From Klebsormidium nitens (lineage: Eukaryota; Plantae; Klebsormidiophyceae), in NCBI GenBank assembly GCA_000708835.1, contig DF237442.1, forward strand, positions 2,177 to 66,176: DNA of 64,000 nucleotides, written 5' to 3'. The notes below the pieces were generated by a model, which was not told where the DNA came from, did no database searches, and saw only the letters and a program-made list of their open reading frames with translations. Shown here piece by piece: positions 6,901 to 15,371 of the stretch; the stretch's first letter is position 1, and the number at the start of each line of letters is the position of its first letter. The translations under genes and the position numbers were made by a program.

Positions 6901-9900
6901 GCACCGCGATGCCCTGGGGAACGGCGGAGGGAGCAATAGGTGCTTGGGCGGTCGAGGAGGGCAAAGGGGTGTGGGGCGCAGCCACGTCCGGCTCTGGCGC
7001 AGCAGACGTGGAAGAGCGGGCAGGGGCGGAACCGGAGTTGGGCGCGTCCCCCAAGTCCTGGGGTGCAGCAGGTGTGTGCTGCTCCTGCTGGGCCGCCCTG
7101 GTCGCGCTCTGGGCAACTACGGCGCTCCGGATGGGGTCCGACGGCAAAGTGCGCGGCTCAAGCGAGGTTAGCCCGGCCGCGTCAAGGGCGGTCGGGGCAC
7201 CGTCGGCAGCTACGGCCTGCGAAAAAGGTGATAAATTTGGAATCAAACCGTTAATCCTTCACCCTCGTAGCGCTGCACGAAAAGCTGCACCTTTCTTGAG
7301 CATTCCCTACGCGGGGTCAAGTGAAGCCTGATGAACGAGCAGAACACAAGGCGCCCCTTCTCAGTGAGTACTTTGTTGGAATGCAGGTGCCGCGTCTCGA
7401 ACTCTGAACGTGCTTTGAAAATCTGTGTTTTATTGGCAGGCATTCTCGATTGGGCGCGACGAGCACCAGCCGCTCATGCAAGGAGACAATGATTCTCTGA
7501 GCATGTACACCTCCTGCCCTCTTGCCAACCCAGAGGGTCACTGAACAAACCGCCCAAGGCTGTCCAAGTTTCTAATCGCTTCGGAAACTCAAACCCTAAG
7601 ATTTCGTGTACATCAGCAACCCAGGCGGCGATTGAATGGCGATGTACACAAAACCAGCTTTCAGGTCGGCAATTGTATGGCGGTTGATGTACACAAACAC
7701 CAGCTTTCACCTCGGCGATTGAATGGCGGTTGATGTACACCAATCTGTCACTACGTCCTGTAAACTTTCGCAACTTTGCCAGCAATTTGCGCGCTGGCTT
7801 TTCTGGGCACGCAACCATACCTTGATGCGATTTGCTGAGTGCCCAAAATCTGACAACCTAGAGTTCTGTCCAGATGCGAGTCAGGGGAAGGGGGGAGGGT
7901 GCTCACCTGGCGGCTGATCGAACGCGGACGCGGGGCGATCACACACGCTCTCGCAAAGTCATCCTCCAGGCTTAGGTCCAACAGGTCCAGCCAGCCGTCG
8001 TCCTCGGGCTCTGGTGGGAGGTCGTCGGACCAGCCGTCGTCCTCAGGTTCCGAAGGGAGGTCGTCTGGCATTGGGTAATCCGTCCCAAGCGCAGACCCTT
8101 CTTCCGGCATGGGGGGGTGCTTGGCGATCACGCCCTGGCTGCAAACCGGGGAGTGCGGACTGTCCTCCTCGCTCGAGGAGTCAGACTCGGGTGACAGCAG
8201 CACGCGGCGGCGACGGCTGGTTTTGCGCGGGTTGGTCGCCCCATCAGGCGCGCGCCGCTTGAGCCTTGCCAGCACCTGGGAAAAATCCTCTTCATCGGAA
8301 TCTGTCTCCATCGCGGCGAACCGGCCGCACCGCACCACCTCGTTCTCCTCTTCCTGAGGGGCGTCGTCGATCATTGCGCGATCTTGGGAGGTTTCCTCGT
8401 CCGAGGTCTCGTTCGCGCTCTCGAACTCCGCCCCCTCAATGTCCTCGCCCTCCCATTCCGACTCCGTCTTCTGCGACTCGTCTCCGCAGAAGAGGCGCGG
8501 CGCCTGCCGATCATCGCCGCCCTGCACAAGTGTGCGCGCCGCCAAAGATCAGATGAATCGATGAAGCAATTAAAGGCGAGCTGCTGGTTCCAAAATCAGA
8601 TGCTGTCAAAAGTCCTTGTCCAAGTGTCCGAGTTCTTGACATGCCTTCTGGGCTCGGGCCTGCTTCGTGACGTCATCAAAGATCAATGGCAATCTGATGG
8701 CAAATGCGAGTTGAGACACACTGCCAGCACCTGTCCAAGTGTCCAGGTATCTGGAGTGCTTTCTGGAGTGCTTTCTGGGCTCGGGCCTGCTTCGTGACCT
8801 CATCAAACATCATGGCAAAAACAGTTGAAGATTTCGATGGAGCAATCTGATGCGAGCTACTGGTTGGACCACAACATGCGCTGCATCGCAGAAACCCGTG
8901 TCCAAGTGTCCGAGTTTCTGTCGCACCTTCAAAGGGCAAAGCTTCATAATGACGTCAGCAAACATCCCGAGTAAATCCCTGTGTGGTTGATGGGGCAGAC
9001 TCTGTCCGAGTGTCCGAGCTCTAGTCACACCTTTCAAAAGCGAAACTCCAGGATGACGTCAGCAGACGTTCTAGAAGGAAACTTTGTAGTTGATGGGGCT
9101 AACACTGTCTGAGTGTCTGACTTCTTGCCATACCTTTCAAGAGCGAAGCTCCTGGATGACGTCAGCAGACGTCCCAGGAAGAAAACTTTGTAGTTGATGG
9201 GATTTGGGAGGACATTGTCTGAGTGTCCAAGTGTGTGACGTGCCTTTTGGGCTCGAGCCTGTATCGTGACATCATCAGAAACTATGGCGAGATGAGTTCT
9301 TAAGAGACAGCCACCAGATTACAGATATGATTCTTGCGGCTACTTAGGCAAGTTGGGGGAAGGGCTGTTCAATCGACTTCACACTTACCTCTGAGTCGTT
9401 GGTGGCCGCTTTCATCTGGCTAAGATGCCACCTGATTCCAGAAGTCTTATAGGGATGTGTATGCAAATGGATATGCTTGCTTGGTTCTCTTATTAAGCGA
9501 CCGCATGCAGTCGCACTTGAAACGCACCTGGCTGCATTGTGCGCTGGACGACTGTGGCCGACTGTCAACGTCCATGGATGCTCCAGGAGCGCCGGCGGGG
9601 GTCTCGATAGGGAAGCTGCTCGTCATCTTCTCTGAAGGGCTCGGGATACCGTCATCTGGGGCGCCTCCCTCCTGCACGTAAGCGGGAGGTGTTGATCAGA
9701 AGTTTGCCGGACAGGCAAAAGTCCAAGCGAAAAAGGCGCAAGAAAGGCCTCAATGCTGGCAGGTGGACCGGCAAGTGTTCATAAATGATCGTGCAACATC
9801 ACGACAACAGACTGCTTGAGCACGTGTTGCTGACGTCCTGCCTTCTGGGCTCGGGCCTGATTCCTGACGTCCGCATCTATCATGACAAGCCGAGCTGTTA

Positions 9901-10947
9901 ACAGAAGAGCACTAGTTGTCCCCAAATCACTGGCATGATTCTCGAGGTACGCCTGCCTAGTAGATGAATTCGACACAATCCAGAGTTATCTTCACACGAA
10001 CCTGTGAGTCGGTGGTGGCCGCTTCGAGCTGCTGTGAAGCTGCCACTTCCTCCCTCAGCCTGCGTTGAAAGTCGCGGAAGTGGCTGGGGTCGATGAGGCC
10101 ATGTAGTGCAGGCCCTTGCGGTTGGCGGGTCTCATGCTCCTGCAAACAAAGAAACGTGTGGTGGGATTGTTGGCAAAGAGAGGGGATTGTCAACCGCTTG
10201 AAAAACGGATTCTTCAAGCTGCCGTGTGCAATGATCGGGCACGGAATTCCGACCGCTGAAGCATCGGGAGGTATGTAAGAAGGAAGGCAACGGGTTGCTT
10301 TTTGTTTTTGAAGAGTGTTAACCAGATGTGCTTGACGAGCCACCTGTGTTCGATGGCAAAGGAAAGATCTCGAGCTAACCCCTGAGATACATCAAATCCT
10401 GAAAGGCGTCCTTACCAGAATTCTTGTCCGAAGTGCGCCTGCTCGCAGAAGAATCTTCAATGAACAATCTGACACCAAACTAATCTCGATTGTGGTTTAC
10501 CCCCCAATAAAGACATCTCAGACAGTGACCACGCCATCGAATACGGAGGATCCTTTCGAGGATGGCTGCTGACGTCATCTAGGAGCTCGGTCTGAAAAGG
10601 TGCGACAAAAACTCGGACACTCGGACAGAGTCCGCCCCATCAACTACAAGGCATCCTATCGGGGATGTATGCTGACGTCATCAAGGAGCTCCCCTCTTGA
10701 ATTGTGTGACAAAAACTCGGACACTCGGACAGAGTCCGCCCCATCAACTACAAGGCATCCTATCGGGGGTGTATGCTGACGGTCGTCAAGGAGCTCCCCT
10801 CTCGAAACGTGTGACAAAAACTCGGACACTCGGACAGAGTCCGCCCCATCAATATGGATACCTCACCTGCAGCCCTTTGGGCAACATGAAGGAACTTTGA
10901 GAGCTGTCCCCAGGAGCATGGCCACCAGGAGAATCCGTCTCCTCCAT
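979..10947 (-). CDS. Spliced D5/P4-type primase-helicase (acidic N-terminal extension + Prim-Pol + Zn finger + D5_N + SF3 helicase + C-terminal wHTH-like domain), about 1290 aa; one 1-nt frameshift, so possibly a recent pseudogene
   Basis: Phase-consistent GT-AG exons: 10947-10867, 10139-10002, 9671-9528, 8521-7907, 7216-6878, 6167-5513, 4738-4253, 3575-3176, 2673-2520, 1832-979. Prim-Pol motifs: IYALDID, GRHFFF, LDTRGEGGMLFVGPS, MPSWL. Zn motif: CPYGANHSGSNNF..YKCNSPEC. D5_N: WWMWDGKRF, LDSNPDILNVQNGVVNLRTGEL. Walker A GSG|GNGKG is rebuilt across the last intron. Walker B VAVTDE, motif C FIQTN, Arg finger NRRL. The five 5' exons are less certain than the five 3' exons. Confidence 0.88.
1950..2430. 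repeat. Two-box repeat copies in the last intron (opposite orientation to 1-420)
   Basis: Repeated GGGAATGGCTGCTGACGTCA...AACTCGGACACTTGGACAC units. Confidence 0.85.
3735..4075. repeat. Degenerate two-box repeat copies in intron 7
   Basis: AAACTCGGACACATGGACAC, GATGCTGACGTCATCC..CTCGAACAC, GATGCTGACGCCATCC..AAACGGACAC. Confidence 0.7.
5235..5320. repeat. Short ~21-bp tandem repeat in intron 6
   Basis: About 4 copies of CAGCCTGA(C/T)TGTG, the last truncated. Confidence 0.7.
6296..6527. repeat. ~12-bp minisatellite (GGCCCCCAAACT) in intron 5
   Basis: Many degenerate tandem GGCCCC(C)AAACT / GGCCCCCGAACC copies. Confidence 0.9.
7625..7745. repeat. ~45-bp tandem repeat in intron 4
   Basis: About 2.7 copies of CGGCGATTGAATGGCGGTTGATGTACACAAACACCAGCTTTCA. 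Confidence 0.8.
8610..9280. repeat. Two-box repeat copies in intron 3
   Basis: Repeated TGTCC(A/G)AGTGTCCGAG...GATGACGTCAGCA units. Confidence 0.85.
10560..10852. repeat. Three near-identical ~105-bp two-box repeat copies in intron 1
   Basis: TGCTGACGTCATC..AAAAACTCGGACACTCGGACAGAGTCCGCCCCATCAA three times; box A of the third copy is degenerate. Confidence 0.9.
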
Positions 10948-12094
10948 TGCCTGCACAGCGTGGGAAATAGAGAGGAAGTGGGTAGAGCAGATTACAAAAA
11001 TTACGCATCAGCATCACCATAAACAGCACACATTGTTCGACCATAGACAGTGAGTATTCGATATGTCCCCCCCTCCCCCCCTTGGACAAGAACCAGCACG
11101 CGATCCCACAATCGACCCCAGTGAACCGTGAACCCGTTCGACAGTGGTCACAAGATCGGCCCGACAGCGGGCCCTGATTCAGCGGAACCACCCCGCTTCC
11201 CCAAGCATCAGAGAAGTTAGCGCAGCGGCGACTGTGATACCCCCCAGCAGCTTGGCCCTTATCAAGCTTAACAGCTGATTTCAGCCAACCCAACGCTGGG
11301 GCCAAGTCAGCAAAGCTACGGGGTTTGAGATCACCCCACAGTATAAGCCCATCAGCAAGTCCAGACCTGCCTAACAGCAGATGGTCAGAATCAGCCAGCC
11401 AAAGCACCTGATGCGCGCTATATACCTGGCGCTATTGCAAGCGTCTTGACATACGAAGGCTCACTTGCAGCTCTTCGTCAACCCCAATGATAGAACCATA
11501 ATAAAGAAATGTGTTCACTGAAGGAAGAATCGCACAAAGAAGCTTCTTCAGTTTGCATTCCCTGTGACGGACGTACCTGACGGAAGCTTCTTTGTTGCGG
11601 CTGAGCAGCTCACCACGGCCTTCTGGCACAACAATCTCAACAATTCGAAACCGTCTCAGGGCAAAAGCCAGGCAGTCCTGAGCTCTGTCCAGCAGTGTAG
11701 GAAAGGTGGTAATATATATGCCTTGGGCCGCAGCAGGTTCGGGCCGGATATTCCAAGCTGCTGCTGACTGTATATTCGGCTGGATGTGCTGTATTTCTTG
11801 ACAGCTGGCACTTTCTCATACCTTCTAGAAGGCTCGGGGTATACCGGCCATACCATGTAAAATGCTAAAAATATTGTAGTATACGGCGCTGCCGACGTCA
11901 GAATCCTAGTGTGACTGAACACTGCAGGTTTGGATTTGGGACGGACACTTGGACGCAAGAGTGCACTCAGAGCGAAGTCGTTACCGTGCTGATGTGAATC
12001 AGAGCGGTAATGGTTAGCCCCCGGTTGGCTTCGACCTCCTTGTTGTCCTTGGAGAAGCCTTTCGACCGCTCGGTCTACCTGCCACCCCTTGGGC

Positions 12095-12147
12095 GGGCTG
12101 ACATGGCGCTCTCTGAGTGGCCCGGATTTTAGTCCGAAGTTCATTTG
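12095..12147 (+). repeat. 53-bp direct repeat, copy 1 (copy 2 at 15319-15371)
   Basis: GGGCTGACATGGCGCTCTCTGAGTGGCCCGGATTTTAGTCCGAAGTTCATTTG; 50/53 identical to copy 2. Confidence 0.9.
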
Positions 12148-12237
12148 CTGATGTTGGTTGTTGGGACTGGGTTGTGACATCATTGATCACTTCTAAAGCG
12201 CCCCAGTGGCAGTAGCTTGGTGCAGGAGCGCTATTAA

Positions 12238-12525
12238 ATGGGCAAAGACTTCGATGATTTGGTGAAAGAGTTGAAAGATTTGGGGTTCAAGCAGCGAAAG
12301 AAGAAACTAGGTAACGGCGACATCTGCTTTTATCACGTAGATTACCCAAACTTCGGTTTCTTAAGGGACTCTAACGTCAATAATTCATTCAGGGTCAAAA
12401 CTTACGTTGATAAAGCAATTGAATTCTTGGAGGAGGCCAAACGCAACGCAGCGAAGGAGGAAGCAGAGCAGAAAGAGGCTGAAGAAGGGCCGGGGAAAAA
12501 CAAGAAAGGGAAGAAGAAGAAGTAA
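12238..12525 (+). CDS. HicA-like (dsRBD-fold mRNA interferase-like) protein, 95 aa, intronless, with a basic C-terminal tail
   Basis: KDFDDLVKELKDLGFKQR..GNGDICFYHVDYP..RVKTYVDKAIEFL follows the HicA pattern (F-x-DL-x-K-x-L-xxx-GF, then FYHPDYP-like, then VKQV-x-KAIE-like). It lies directly upstream of a HicB-like gene. The usual GSH His is not evident. Confidence 0.6.
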   Translation: MGKDFDDLVKELKDLGFKQRKKKLGNGDICFYHVDYPNFGFLRDSNVNNSFRVKTYVDKAIEFLEEAKRNAAKEEAEQKEAEEGPGKNKKGKKKK

Positions 12526-12993
12526 TGGCTGGTGCGGCTCACCATGCAATCTGCTGTTTAAAGAGTGCATAAGTCCATGTTCCGGCCTAGCATTCTGAGT
12601 CCAGGGCCTTTGTGCTCGCGTTGGTCACACACTGCATCCTTGGTTCTTGAAGTAAGAGCTTGCGACAGTTTTTCCGCGACATTTTCATCAATTGAGTCTG
12701 GAGAAGGGCCTTCTTTTTGAATCGTTGATCGAGATTCGAGGAGCTGCTTTTGGGACTTCAGGAGGCTACTTGCGTTGGATGTTTCCTTATCGCTTTGCTG
12801 CATGAGCAAGGAGGTCAAGAATACCTCCTGTTGGGCATCACCACGTTGAATAATATCTGAGATGGTCTGGCAGTGGGACTGCGCTGTTAGGTTATGATCC
12901 ACAATTTCACCACACATGCTTTTGCAGGAATTGATGCTAAGATTCTCCTTTGTCCTCTTGCCAGCGGTGGGGCAGCAAGTGGTTCAGCGCGGC

Positions 12994-14222
12994 ATGGGGG
13001 CCAGGGGAAGATTCAAGGGGGAGGGAAAGGGGAAGGAGCCGCAGAAACGAAAACGGACTGAAGCAGGTGGTGCGAGCGGCAGCGCAGCGGAAGGCGGGAG
13101 TCTGGAGCAGGGCGCTGCAAAGCTGAAGGCGGGAGAGTGGACGCGCGTCAAGGAGGCGGACGACTATGATGTCAAGGACGTGTTCTCCAAGGTGCTGCAC
13201 GGGCTGGAGTACCCTGCGTACGTCTCGCGAGAGCTGCACGAGGAGACGGGAGTCCCCTTCTACTATGCGGAGGCGCCCGACATCAGGGACCTCTGCACCA
13301 TGAGGCCCAACGCGCGGGAGGTGAGTGGAATGAGCAGCTTCTCATCGGAATGTTCATGCTCGCCTCTTTGAGATATGGATGGCTGTTCAACTCATTCCTG
13401 CAGTTCAATTACGGGCGAGGGCCTTCGGCCCAATCAGTCAGAGTGTATTTGTGCCTTCCGTTGAAGGGACTGAAGTGCTGAGGCATGTTTGCCTTTCCTG
13501 GAGGCATGTCGCTTTCCTTCAAGCATGCTTTCTCTGGCACTGCTGCTCGCTTCCTGGCGTGTTTATCTGCGGATGGTGCACATTCCAGTGTGCATGCTGA
13601 AGTCAGCAATTGCTAACGATATTTTCCTGAGATCGCACTCGTTCATCTGCAAAAGTTGCAACAGAAGTCTGGTCGGAAAGGTTTGGTTTTGACATTCAAT
13701 GAATGCTTCGATGGCAGGCGCAGGATGTGCTGGCGCGCCACCTCCACGCGGAGCTGGCAGAACGCGCAATCATCAGGATGCTGCCACCGCTGCCGTCGCC
13801 AGACCTGCCGCCGAATTCGGTGAAGCCGACCTACACCTGGAAGATACGAATCGACGGGGAGAGGTAAGAAGGGCAGCGGGGCCACAGACTCAATCGATCG
13901 CATGGATCGCATGGATGTGTACGGCAAACCTTGCTCAGGTGCAGAGCCTTGAGACTTGCGAGCGCTGCTGCATTGGCAGGAAGCTGTTTCTTGTTTGAAA
14001 TGCACGCATTAACTCTCTCTGAAACTCTTGGGTTTGATCTCCAGTCCTAGCTCTGTCAGAACTGAATTGCGTGAGCCAGCCAAAGACGAAACGCAAAAAA
14101 GAGAAGGTTTGTCAGGCTGTATATGGTGACCAGGTTCTGATTGACTCGTTGAAATTTGCAGGCTCACCCGGTTACTCAACAGCATCGACATCGGCCATGT
14201 CGAAGCTACCGATTCGGATTAG
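12994..14222 (+). CDS. HicB-like antitoxin, 3 exons, 177 aa from ATG 12994 (may gain a 5' exon from the HicA-like ORF)
   Basis: Exons 12994-13320, 13718-13863, 14162-14222 are GT-AG and in phase. Product YPAYVSRELHEETGVPFYYAEAPDIRDLCTMRPNARE|AQDVLARHLHAELAE..PLPSP..KPTYTWKIRIDGE|RLTRLL matches HicB features: YP start, Y-x-A-x-x-PD(I/L)-xxxx-T, EA helix, PLPSP linker and an RHH-like strand-helix. Exon 3 is the least certain. Confidence 0.65.
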
Positions 14223-15318
14223 TGTGCTAGGCTCCTATATTGTTAAGGAAATAAGTCAAACGATGTTTGTGTGTATGCTTCGCCAAGCAGGGGATGCAAA
14301 AGCAGGGGCAGGCGTGCGAGCGCAGCTAGAGTTAGCCAAGACAATAAACAGGCGGGCGCTTGCTTCTGCAGACCAGGGGCGGTGTGACCTCCTTCATGAA
14401 AAGCTCGGACCTCGAATTCGTTTCTTCATGTAATTTGCGGGTGTTCTTTCTCGAGGTTTGTCTACCTCACTAGTGGCTTCATGAAACACGGGCATGAGAA
14501 AGCATGCGCAAAACAACTTGTTTCATAGAAGAATCCGTGCAAAGCAGAGCTCATCTTAGGTGCGCGTCACCGCCCATGCAATTAATGTACAACGCCTTCT
14601 TGGTGTGCCCTGCAAAATCCGGTTTAAGTTATGGAGTGCATGCTGTTCTAAATTCCGATCATGCATACTCTTGCACACTATAGGACACAATTCAAAGTCC
14701 TTGCATGGTTTAGCAGCTTGGGTGCATCTATGGTTATATAGGCAGCGTCGTCAGCGGGCGAAATGCGAGGCTAAGGAGAGTCGACGATTCCGAGTTACGA
14801 ATAGCGGGGAAAGCGGGCGCGTGGACCCCACCATGACACGGGATTATCGTCAACGGGCGCTCATAAACTATACAAATTCGATTTACCTACAAAGTGGGTA
14901 AAACTTTTTGTGCTCCAGCTGCATTTAGACACTCGATTGAAAAGCAATGCGTCACAAATTAACACGACAAACTCGCCGGATAGCTACGACGCCGCGCGCT
15001 TCACTGGGTCAACACCGTCGTGGGCCGCTGTAGAGTCCGTGAACTCCTTTTTGACACAACCAACTCGGACACCGTCCGTAAGTTAATCCGGACGCGCGGT
15101 CGTCGTAAAATTAAATTGATAAGTCGGAAATCGCCGACGGTGGGTACTTCCTCCACACTTAAGGAAAGAAAGGCTGCATATTGGCCTCTTGTAAGTTGTC
15201 CCTAAGTGAGTGCCCGGTTGATACCAGACAACACAATGTGGTATGTACCACTTCCGGGATGGGCCTTCGACCGCGGTTAGGCACCGGCCTGCTACCTCCA
15301 CTCTTGCGACTCCCGGGG

Positions 15319-15371
15319 GGGCTGACATGGCGCTCTCTGAGTGGCCCAAATTTTAATCCGAAGTTCATTTG
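15319..15371 (+). repeat. 53-bp direct repeat, copy 2
   Basis: GGGCTGACATGGCGCTCTCTGAGTGGCCCAAATTTTAATCCGAAGTTCATTTG. Confidence 0.9.

Follow-up and report, generated by a model that had tools for sequence, protein, structure and literature searches.

Two kinds of described gene pairs come closest to the locus reported here. On the one hand, bicistronic nuclear genes are known in the green algae Chlamydomonas reinhardtii, Auxenochlorella protothecoides, and Chromochloris zofingiensis, in which short spacers between the two open reading frames (ORFs) and a depletion of ATGs before ORF2 are the hallmarks and leaky scanning is the main mechanism (PMC11892635). On the other hand, bacteria, archaea, and phages carry hicAB loci, which are toxin-antitoxin operons of type II (HicA, PF07927/COG1724; HicB, PF15919, PF05534, COG1598/4226), in which HicA is a single-domain protein of 50-100 amino acids (aa) whose catalytic His, together with the Gly before it, is conserved in a G-S/G-H motif (PMC11594946). 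Here we describe a pair of adjacent ORFs on scaffold DF237442.1 (GCA_000708835.1) of the charophyte alga Klebsormidium nitens. The window analyzed is the whole stretch of 64,000 nt (window position = record position - 2176), and coordinates are window positions unless a contig is named. The first member of the pair, ORF1, is absent from the annotation, while the second, gene 2, is the annotated orphan KFL_004930020. With moderate confidence, we read the two as a lineage-restricted nuclear two-ORF cassette, present in Klebsormidium and two related uncultured algae, whose orphan products work together.

The initial annotation had proposed two adjacent genes on the same strand, and both were confirmed, the first as an intact 95-codon ORF at 12238-12525 (+) and the second ending at 14222. 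Their features are listed below, where P0002, P0003, and P0004 are fragments of gene 2 homologues, L002 and L003 are contigs of the related algae, and ^ marks a splice site.

12238-12525, + strand: ORF1, an intact ATG-to-TAA frame of 95 codons, absent from the annotation
12523-12527, + strand: TAATG, the ORF1 stop overlapping the gene 2 ATG through a shared A, read directly in the sequence
12525-12531, + strand: gene 2 coding exon 1, ATGGCTG (the NCBI gene range is window 12525-14222)
12532-12964, + strand: intron 1, 433 nt, GTGCGG to GCCAG (acceptor ...gccag^ shared with L002 and L003)
12965-13320, + strand: gene 2 exon 2 (the homologues P0003 and P0004 stop at the same donor)
13321-13717, + strand: intron 2, 397 nt (three-way alignment)
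13718-13863, + strand: gene 2 exon 3, AQDVLARHLHAELAERAIIRMLPPLPSP...WKIRIDGE- (70% identical to P0002/L002, 40% to L003)
13864-14161, + strand: intron 3, 298 nt (donor GTAAG(A/G) and acceptor conserved)
14162-14222, + strand: gene 2 exon 4, -RLTRLLNSIDIGHVEATDSD, then stop (the splice reproduces the annotated protein)

Joining 12525-12531, 12965-13320, 13718-13863, and 14162-14222 gives exactly the annotated gene 2 protein (P0001, 189 aa, four exons). The junctions NARE^AQDVL and IDGER^LTRLL, which the initial annotation had rebuilt, are exact in this protein, and the deposited model adds to that earlier one a 7-nt first coding exon. Exon 2 encodes a disordered N-terminus with a KRKR cluster and then the first half of a domain (EYPAYV...APDIRDL...NARE); the protein as a whole comprises a conserved, KRKR-rich N-terminal basic cluster resembling a nuclear localization signal (NLS) and an alpha/beta domain of ~125 aa. 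Between K. nitens and L002, the proportions of nonsynonymous and synonymous differences in this domain (pN and pS) are 0.25 and 0.61, with 40/22/74 differences at the three codon positions. Judged by this substitution pattern, gene 2 is protein-coding and under purifying selection.

The ORF1 product is a basic protein of 95 aa with a conserved core (residues 1-68), followed by a K/E-rich helix and a poly-Lys tail that varies in sequence and leaves a polybasic C-terminus in all lineages. An intact homologue lies upstream of gene 2 on the same strand in L002 and L004, with 68% aa identity over the core (tblastn E 1e-27 for L002). Over residues 1-68, dN between K. nitens and L002 is 0.22, synonymous change is saturated (pS ~1.0), and the codon-position differences are 15/14/42; over residues 11-68, pN is 0.19, pS is 0.96, and the differences are 13/11/36. 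By the same measure, ORF1 is a protein-coding gene under purifying selection that was missed by annotation, and the K. nitens genome gains with it a selectively constrained protein gene. When a collection of 5.8 billion proteins was queried, the word-indexed search with ORF1 gave no match and the search with the ORF1 alignment returned the L002/L004 homologue (P0007) as the sole match. A weak match to the PADLOC type II restriction enzyme model REase_II (PDLC03452; E 0.02, residues 30-61) was seen in both ORF1 and P0007; the PD-(D/E)XK nuclease reading that it prompted was set aside, as ORF1 has no matching catalytic motif and the match is probably noise.

An exhaustive phmmer search with the P0001 domain retrieved only the algal exon fragments P0002, P0003 (52% identity), and P0004 (42%) and two spurious repetitive bacterial proteins (P0005 and P0006). 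The three algal fragments come from Joint Genome Institute (JGI) metagenome contigs, where prokaryote-style gene calling picked out exons of homologous genes. Contigs L002 and L004 represent one organism in two samples, identical over 9.7 kb, and L003 a more distant one, which makes three lineages together with K. nitens. The pair was found on the same strand and in the same order in each of them, and gene 2 keeps its four-exon structure, all three intron positions, and in-frame splicing throughout. The outer neighbours differ in every lineage, with no synteny detectable among them, while the linkage and order of ORF1 and gene 2 are retained. Neutral divergence is saturated, as judged by the 200 nt on either side of the cassette, whose alignment is no better than that of shuffled controls. 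Two scans of metagenome contigs, one with ORF1 and one with the gene 2 exon-2 alignment, yielded no confirmed relative. The presence of the cassette in three algal lineages is probably due to vertical inheritance.

The L003 copy of ORF1 (729-1050 of that contig) is recognizable, at 53-59% identity, and carries two in-frame stops, one following GFV and the other NASR, as well as a frameshift within the Lys/Glu tail, with an intact gene 2 downstream. Its codon-position differences (20/17/29) are still coding-like, which suggests that the decay is recent.

The locus is eukaryotic and nuclear. Bacterial contamination is excluded because the pair lies on a K. nitens scaffold next to an intron-rich gene and because the three intron positions of gene 2 are kept in two other lineages. 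In the NCBI record, the cassette is flanked on one side by an intron-rich Prim-Pol/D5_N gene and downstream by an ABC transporter gene. The initial annotation had held that a spliceosomal intron argues against contamination, a view borne out by the scaffold context and by the intron positions shared among the three lineages.

The junction between the two ORFs is where the evidence for a shared transcription unit is concentrated. From the ORF1 stop to the gene 2 ATG, the spacing is a 1-nt overlap in K. nitens (TAATGGCTG^GTGCGG), 5 nt in L002 (TAGCAGACATGGCTG^GTGCG), and 1 nt in L003 (TAGCATGGCTG^GTGAC). The block ATGGCTG^GTG after the ORF1 stop and the acceptor gccag^ are conserved in all three lineages, in each of which the splice of exon 1 to exon 2 is in frame and gives a protein beginning MAA... 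or MAE.... The best reading is that ORF1 and gene 2 would constitute one nuclear transcription unit with two ORFs, and the main argument for it is the conservation of the junction block and acceptor amid poorly conserved surrounding DNA.

The same evidence bears on the possibility that the two are independent neighbours with their own promoters and terminators, in which case gene 2 would start at a Met further downstream and neither the adjacency nor the ATGGCTG block would reflect shared expression. Such downstream in-frame ATGs exist (12994 in K. nitens; MQQ at 2657 in L002) and are used by prokaryote-style gene callers, and the donor of intron 1 is atypical. Base composition also differs between the two, with GC contents of 0.43 and 0.64 and third-position GC contents (GC3) of 0.58 and 0.78 for ORF1 and gene 2, respectively; neighbouring long coding ORFs have GC3 values of 0.64-0.76, and the ORF1 homologue of L002 has a GC3 of 0.58, equal to that of K. 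nitens ORF1. However, ATGGCTG^GTG and gccag^ have persisted in three lineages whose flanking intergenic DNA is unalignable, and the splice stays in frame in all of them. Furthermore, exon 2 of L003 offers no alternative Met before the conserved domain, and the two genes have kept their linkage and order while their outer neighbours changed. We consider independent expression of the two genes very improbable.

As a single transcription unit, ORF1 and gene 2 (ORF2) would share one mRNA, on which ribosomes would arrive at ORF2 through leaky scanning or through termination-reinitiation at the junction, by analogy with chlorophyte bicistronic nuclear genes. The cassette resembles the latter in having two conserved same-strand ORFs with a small ORF1, very short spacing, an arrangement kept between species, apparently few ATGs before ORF2, and an ORF2 ATG in seemingly good context (the ATGs of ORF1 and ORF2 alike have a purine at -3 along with a G at +4). 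It departs from them in its streptophyte host, in its unusually tight junction, with stop and start overlapping or 1-5 nt apart and an intron 7 nt into ORF2, and in the orphan nature of both products; in addition, we infer the single mRNA here. MOCS2-like and other known bicistronic families were considered and had no Pfam support. Termination-reinitiation at UAAUG or AUGA junctions is a feature of RNA viruses such as influenza B (M1/BM2) and the caliciviruses. The K. nitens junction shares with these the UAAUG overlap, and the spacing is within a few nt in the other lineages; unlike them, it belongs to a cellular nuclear gene, and its spacing varies (overlap, 1 nt, and 5 nt).

Several points weigh against a bicistronic cassette of cooperating orphan proteins. 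Co-transcription is read only from sequence conservation and the deposited gene model. The window-wide frequency predicts ~4.2 internal ATGs in ORF1 (288 and 291 nt), and each species has a single one, out of frame; this depletion is marginal (Poisson P ~0.08) and seen in two species that are not independent. The ORF1 ATG context looks strong, whereas the chlorophyte bicistrons that have been studied have weak ORF1 contexts (PMC11892635). The intron-1 donors (GTGCGG, GTGCGC, and GTGACT) are atypical when set against the GTGAGT and GTAAGA of the gene's other introns, and ORF1 is dispensable in at least one lineage, given the two stops and frameshift of L003 next to its intact gene 2. Finally, a plain pair of orphans leaves unexplained a set of weak but specific HicA/HicB-like signals, which are described further below.

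Some of these observations would suit a different role for ORF1. Conserved-peptide upstream ORFs (uORFs) and plant bicistronic transcripts of the CDC26-TTM3 type have a small conserved ORF in the leader of a larger gene, and polybasic tracts can slow ribosomes at a stop codon. ORF1 might likewise be a cis-regulatory uORF of the conserved-peptide type that throttles gene 2, its peptide having no function of its own. It shares with both kinds of transcript the position of a small conserved ORF in the leader of the same transcription unit: it lies within the would-be 5' leader of KFL_004930020 and ends at the gene 2 ATG. Its start codon context looks strong, its C-terminus is polybasic in all lineages, and L003 can dispense with it. 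Unlike in conserved-peptide uORFs, however, conservation is concentrated in the N-terminal 68 residues, for which a compact fold is predicted, and the tail near the stop varies. Moreover, 95 aa is long for a regulatory uORF, and the amino acid sequence of ORF1 is constrained (pN 0.19) no less strongly than the gene 2 domain (pN 0.25). No homology of the cassette proteins to conserved-peptide uORF or CDC26-TTM3 families was found. A purely regulatory ORF1 seems to us quite improbable.

The initial annotation had gone further, claiming for each gene an independent match to one half of a single type II toxin-antitoxin family, HicA and HicB. This claim did not hold up, since no profile match was obtained and what remains is a sub-threshold resemblance. 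Searches of Pfam, NCBIfam, PHROGs, and PADLOC at E<=10 returned no HicA or HicB family for either protein or its homologues (including P0007 and both full-length P0001 and its parts), so that the profile check proposed at the outset came back empty. HicA and HicB were also absent from the results of sequence and profile searches of PDB chains with both proteins, tblastn against 72,556 plasmids gave no match at E<=10, and the exhaustive phmmer search with the gene 2 domain retrieved no HicB.

Direct profile-profile comparison gave the faint signals mentioned above. For hhalign, the references were the hicAB of E. coli K-12 and 13 plasmid loci (11 HicA and 14 HicB), enlarged with phage loci to 21 HicA and 29 HicB clusters; controls were run in local mode, with column-shuffle nulls of 600-1000 trials. 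The ORF1 family aligned with HicA over 18-31 columns, from helix 1 to strand 2, at a probability of 2.2-3.4% (P 0.013-0.022), a score reached by shuffles in 6 of 1000 and 5 of 600 trials. Gene 2, from the three spliced species, aligned with HicB over 61-67 columns in the register of the initial annotation at a probability of 5.6-13.5% (P 0.002-0.007), reached by 1 of 1000 and 1 of 600 shuffles; the aligned features were YPAYV/YPVTL, PDI/DIP, the EA helix, and LPPLPSP/IPLPSP. Probabilities thus spanned 2-14%, and the larger profiles did not raise them. The cross-comparisons (ORF1 with HicB and gene 2 with HicA) stayed near the shuffle null, at 0.2-1.7%. Against natural-sequence decoys, single ORF1 sequences were equalled or beaten by 7 and 30 of 346 (p 0.02-0.09) and single gene 2 sequences by 11, 52, and 2 of 190 (p 0.01-0.27). 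Among the 991 stop-to-stop ORFs of the window scanned with hidden Markov models (HMMs), ORF1 ranked 90th-98th for HicA, while spliced gene 2 ranked 4th-5th for HicB (E 4-5.5).

Structure prediction added little firmness to these comparisons. The fold expected of HicA is alpha-beta-beta-beta-alpha, and that expected of the HicB N-terminus is a partial RNase H-like one. The single-sequence AlphaFold2 (AF2) model of ORF1 is alpha-beta-beta-beta-alpha (H5-14, E19-23, E29-34, E39-44, and H51-78) and of low confidence, with a predicted local distance difference test score (pLDDT) of 61.5 and a predicted template modelling (TM) score of 0.38; that of the gene 2 domain is strand-strand-helix-strand-helix, also of low confidence (pLDDT 49.5). 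Foldseek searches of these low-confidence models against 350,542 PDB chains ranked 1whz, a structure of the HicA family, eighth for ORF1 (E 0.73, TM 0.31-0.38) and the Burkholderia pseudomallei HicB chains 6g26_A, 6g26_B, and 6g1n_A third, sixth, and ninth for gene 2 (E 0.7-1.6, TM ~0.2). Nothing reached E<=0.001 for either protein, and in BFVD no annotated HicA was within the top 50 for ORF1. Given the low confidence of the models, these results are hints at best.

The residues and domains that define HicAB were compared as well. At 95 aa, with a core of residues 1-68, ORF1 falls within the size range of HicA. The catalytic His is the only invariant column in the 11-sequence HicA alignment, and hhalign places Asp28 of ORF1 (LGNGD) in it; this Asp is kept in L002 and replaced by Val in the decayed L003 copy. 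In gene 2, no helix-turn-helix (HTH) or ribbon-helix-helix (RHH) family was found, and the protein ends ~20 residues past its last predicted strand and helix; HicB proteins consisting of the N-terminal domain only are also annotated in bacteria (L118, 81 aa). In K. nitens, L002/L004, and L003 alike, gene 2 directly follows ORF1 on the same strand, as hicB follows hicA. In bona fide pairs, HicA is a ribosome-independent RNase whose expression arrests growth, and HicB binds its cognate HicA and neutralizes it. Among the tests of HicAB membership that were run, only size and gene order came out in favour of the label. With the HicA catalytic His missing from ORF1 and any DNA-binding domain missing from gene 2, the pair should not be classed as a hicAB toxin-antitoxin module; the resemblance is sub-threshold and better for gene 2 than for ORF1.

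Descent is a separate matter from membership. A bacterial hicAB operon could have been acquired horizontally by an algal ancestor and then have gained introns, an NLS-like N-terminus, and bicistronic expression while diverging beyond profile detection, a history that we think unlikely. [quoted passage not shown] The pair would then be a domesticated toxin-antitoxin system in a streptophyte nucleus, its folds and mutual binding kept and the catalytic His lost, which we rate as a minority possibility.

Like hicAB, the cassette encodes a small protein and then a larger partner, the stop of the first lying next to the start of the second or overlapping it, and the sizes (95 aa and a domain of ~125 aa) fit. 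The order of secondary structure elements in the low-confidence models fits both folds, each protein aligns below threshold but in the expected register in hhalign and Foldseek, and some of the weak signals show specificity, in that the cross-controls lie at the null level, gene 2 comes near the top for the HicB HMM, and HicB chains recur among its best structural matches. L003 has also lost the putative toxin and retained the putative antitoxin. On the other hand, every database search was without a match, the hhalign probabilities remained low with the enlarged profiles, single sequences were unremarkable beside natural decoys, ORF1 ranked poorly for HicA, and the structural matches had poor E values and TM scores on low-confidence models. 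Asp in the catalytic His column, the missing HTH or RHH, spliceosomal introns, the NLS-like N-terminus, a nuclear location, and occurrence in three algal lineages all set the cassette apart from known hicAB loci. There is also a selection bias, in that the hypothesis was drawn from these same similarities. The operon-like order, for its part, can be accounted for without a bacterial source, given that green algae have documented bicistronic nuclear genes (PMC11892635).

If the resemblance to HicA and HicB proved true, the cassette would apparently be the first nuclear, intron-bearing gene pair to descend from a type II toxin-antitoxin operon; none was found in a literature search that was not exhaustive. 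If it is false, the case illustrates how matches to two motifs, made by eye in genes that lie side by side, can pass for a known two-gene system.

A lineage-restricted cassette of two cooperating orphans remains our preferred reading. We infer the functions of the ORF1 and gene 2 proteins: the dsRBD-like topology predicted for ORF1, together with its basic tail and the NLS-like cluster of gene 2, suggests nucleic-acid binding in the nucleus, and the two products would act together, probably as a nucleic-acid-binding complex. The kind of arrangement is already known in green algae, and the K. nitens locus suggests that a streptophyte alga, close to the lineage of land plants, likewise has the bicistronic nuclear organization of chlorophytes.

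Within the gene 2 introns, sequence conservation is uneven. Intron 1 contains a few conserved blocks, and a minus-strand ORF within it (12558-12917) was rejected, as it shows no conservation as protein. Intron 2 is of nearly constant length in the three lineages (397/392/397 nt) and has an identity of 0.66 against 0.54 in the shuffled control, with several conserved blocks, especially at ~13398-13404 and 13476-13490. These include an internal polypyrimidine-CAG and GTGCTGAGGCATG, and the blocks might be an alternative (poison) exon or a splicing element. No Rfam family was found in intron 2, and a conserved RNA structure was discarded on account of weak energy and no net covariation support.

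The surroundings of the cassette were also inspected. On the minus strand, the intron-rich gene KFL_004930010 (1-12144) encodes a protein of 1299 aa in which Prim-Pol and D5_N domains are combined as in the primase-helicases of large DNA viruses and mobile elements. This gene is divergent to ORF1, the annotated starts being only ~94 nt apart. Arrays of ~104-nt tandem repeats lie within its span (8600-9250 and 10517-10886) and are mutually inverted, with arms of up to 126 nt that are 76-84% complementary. Immediately downstream of the cassette, where the ABC transporter gene has its annotated start, there is a sub-threshold Rfam match to the C/D-box small nucleolar RNA R24 (snoR24) at 14489-14576 (- strand; 23.4 bits, gathering score 38). 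As the only Rfam result for 11800-14600, with E 0.56, it was taken as chance. ARAGORN found no tRNA.

A 57-nt direct repeat, 93% identical between its copies, flanks the cassette in K. nitens (12091-12147 and 15315-15371), and its first copy overlaps codons 1-18 of the minus-strand Prim-Pol gene as annotated. Its 27-nt core has no other occurrence in the 64 kb, and neither a tRNA (ARAGORN) nor a stable fold was found in the repeat. A copy with ~75% similarity lies downstream of the cassette in L002 (6810-6835) and L004 (6850-6875), with none in L003; the L002 version includes TGACGTGGC, which resembles the bZIP Hex/G-box core. Possible identities of this direct repeat are a cis-regulatory element, a fragment of some repeat, and the footprint of a duplication. 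The L002/L004 organism also has nested inverted repeats (300-386/7002-7088 and 1074-1145/6638-6709 in L002, 98% and 89% complementary), a counterpart of which was not seen in K. nitens or L003. They enclose a segment of ~5.5-6.7 kb with the cassette and may represent the ends of a transposon or a dispersed repeat present in two inverted copies.

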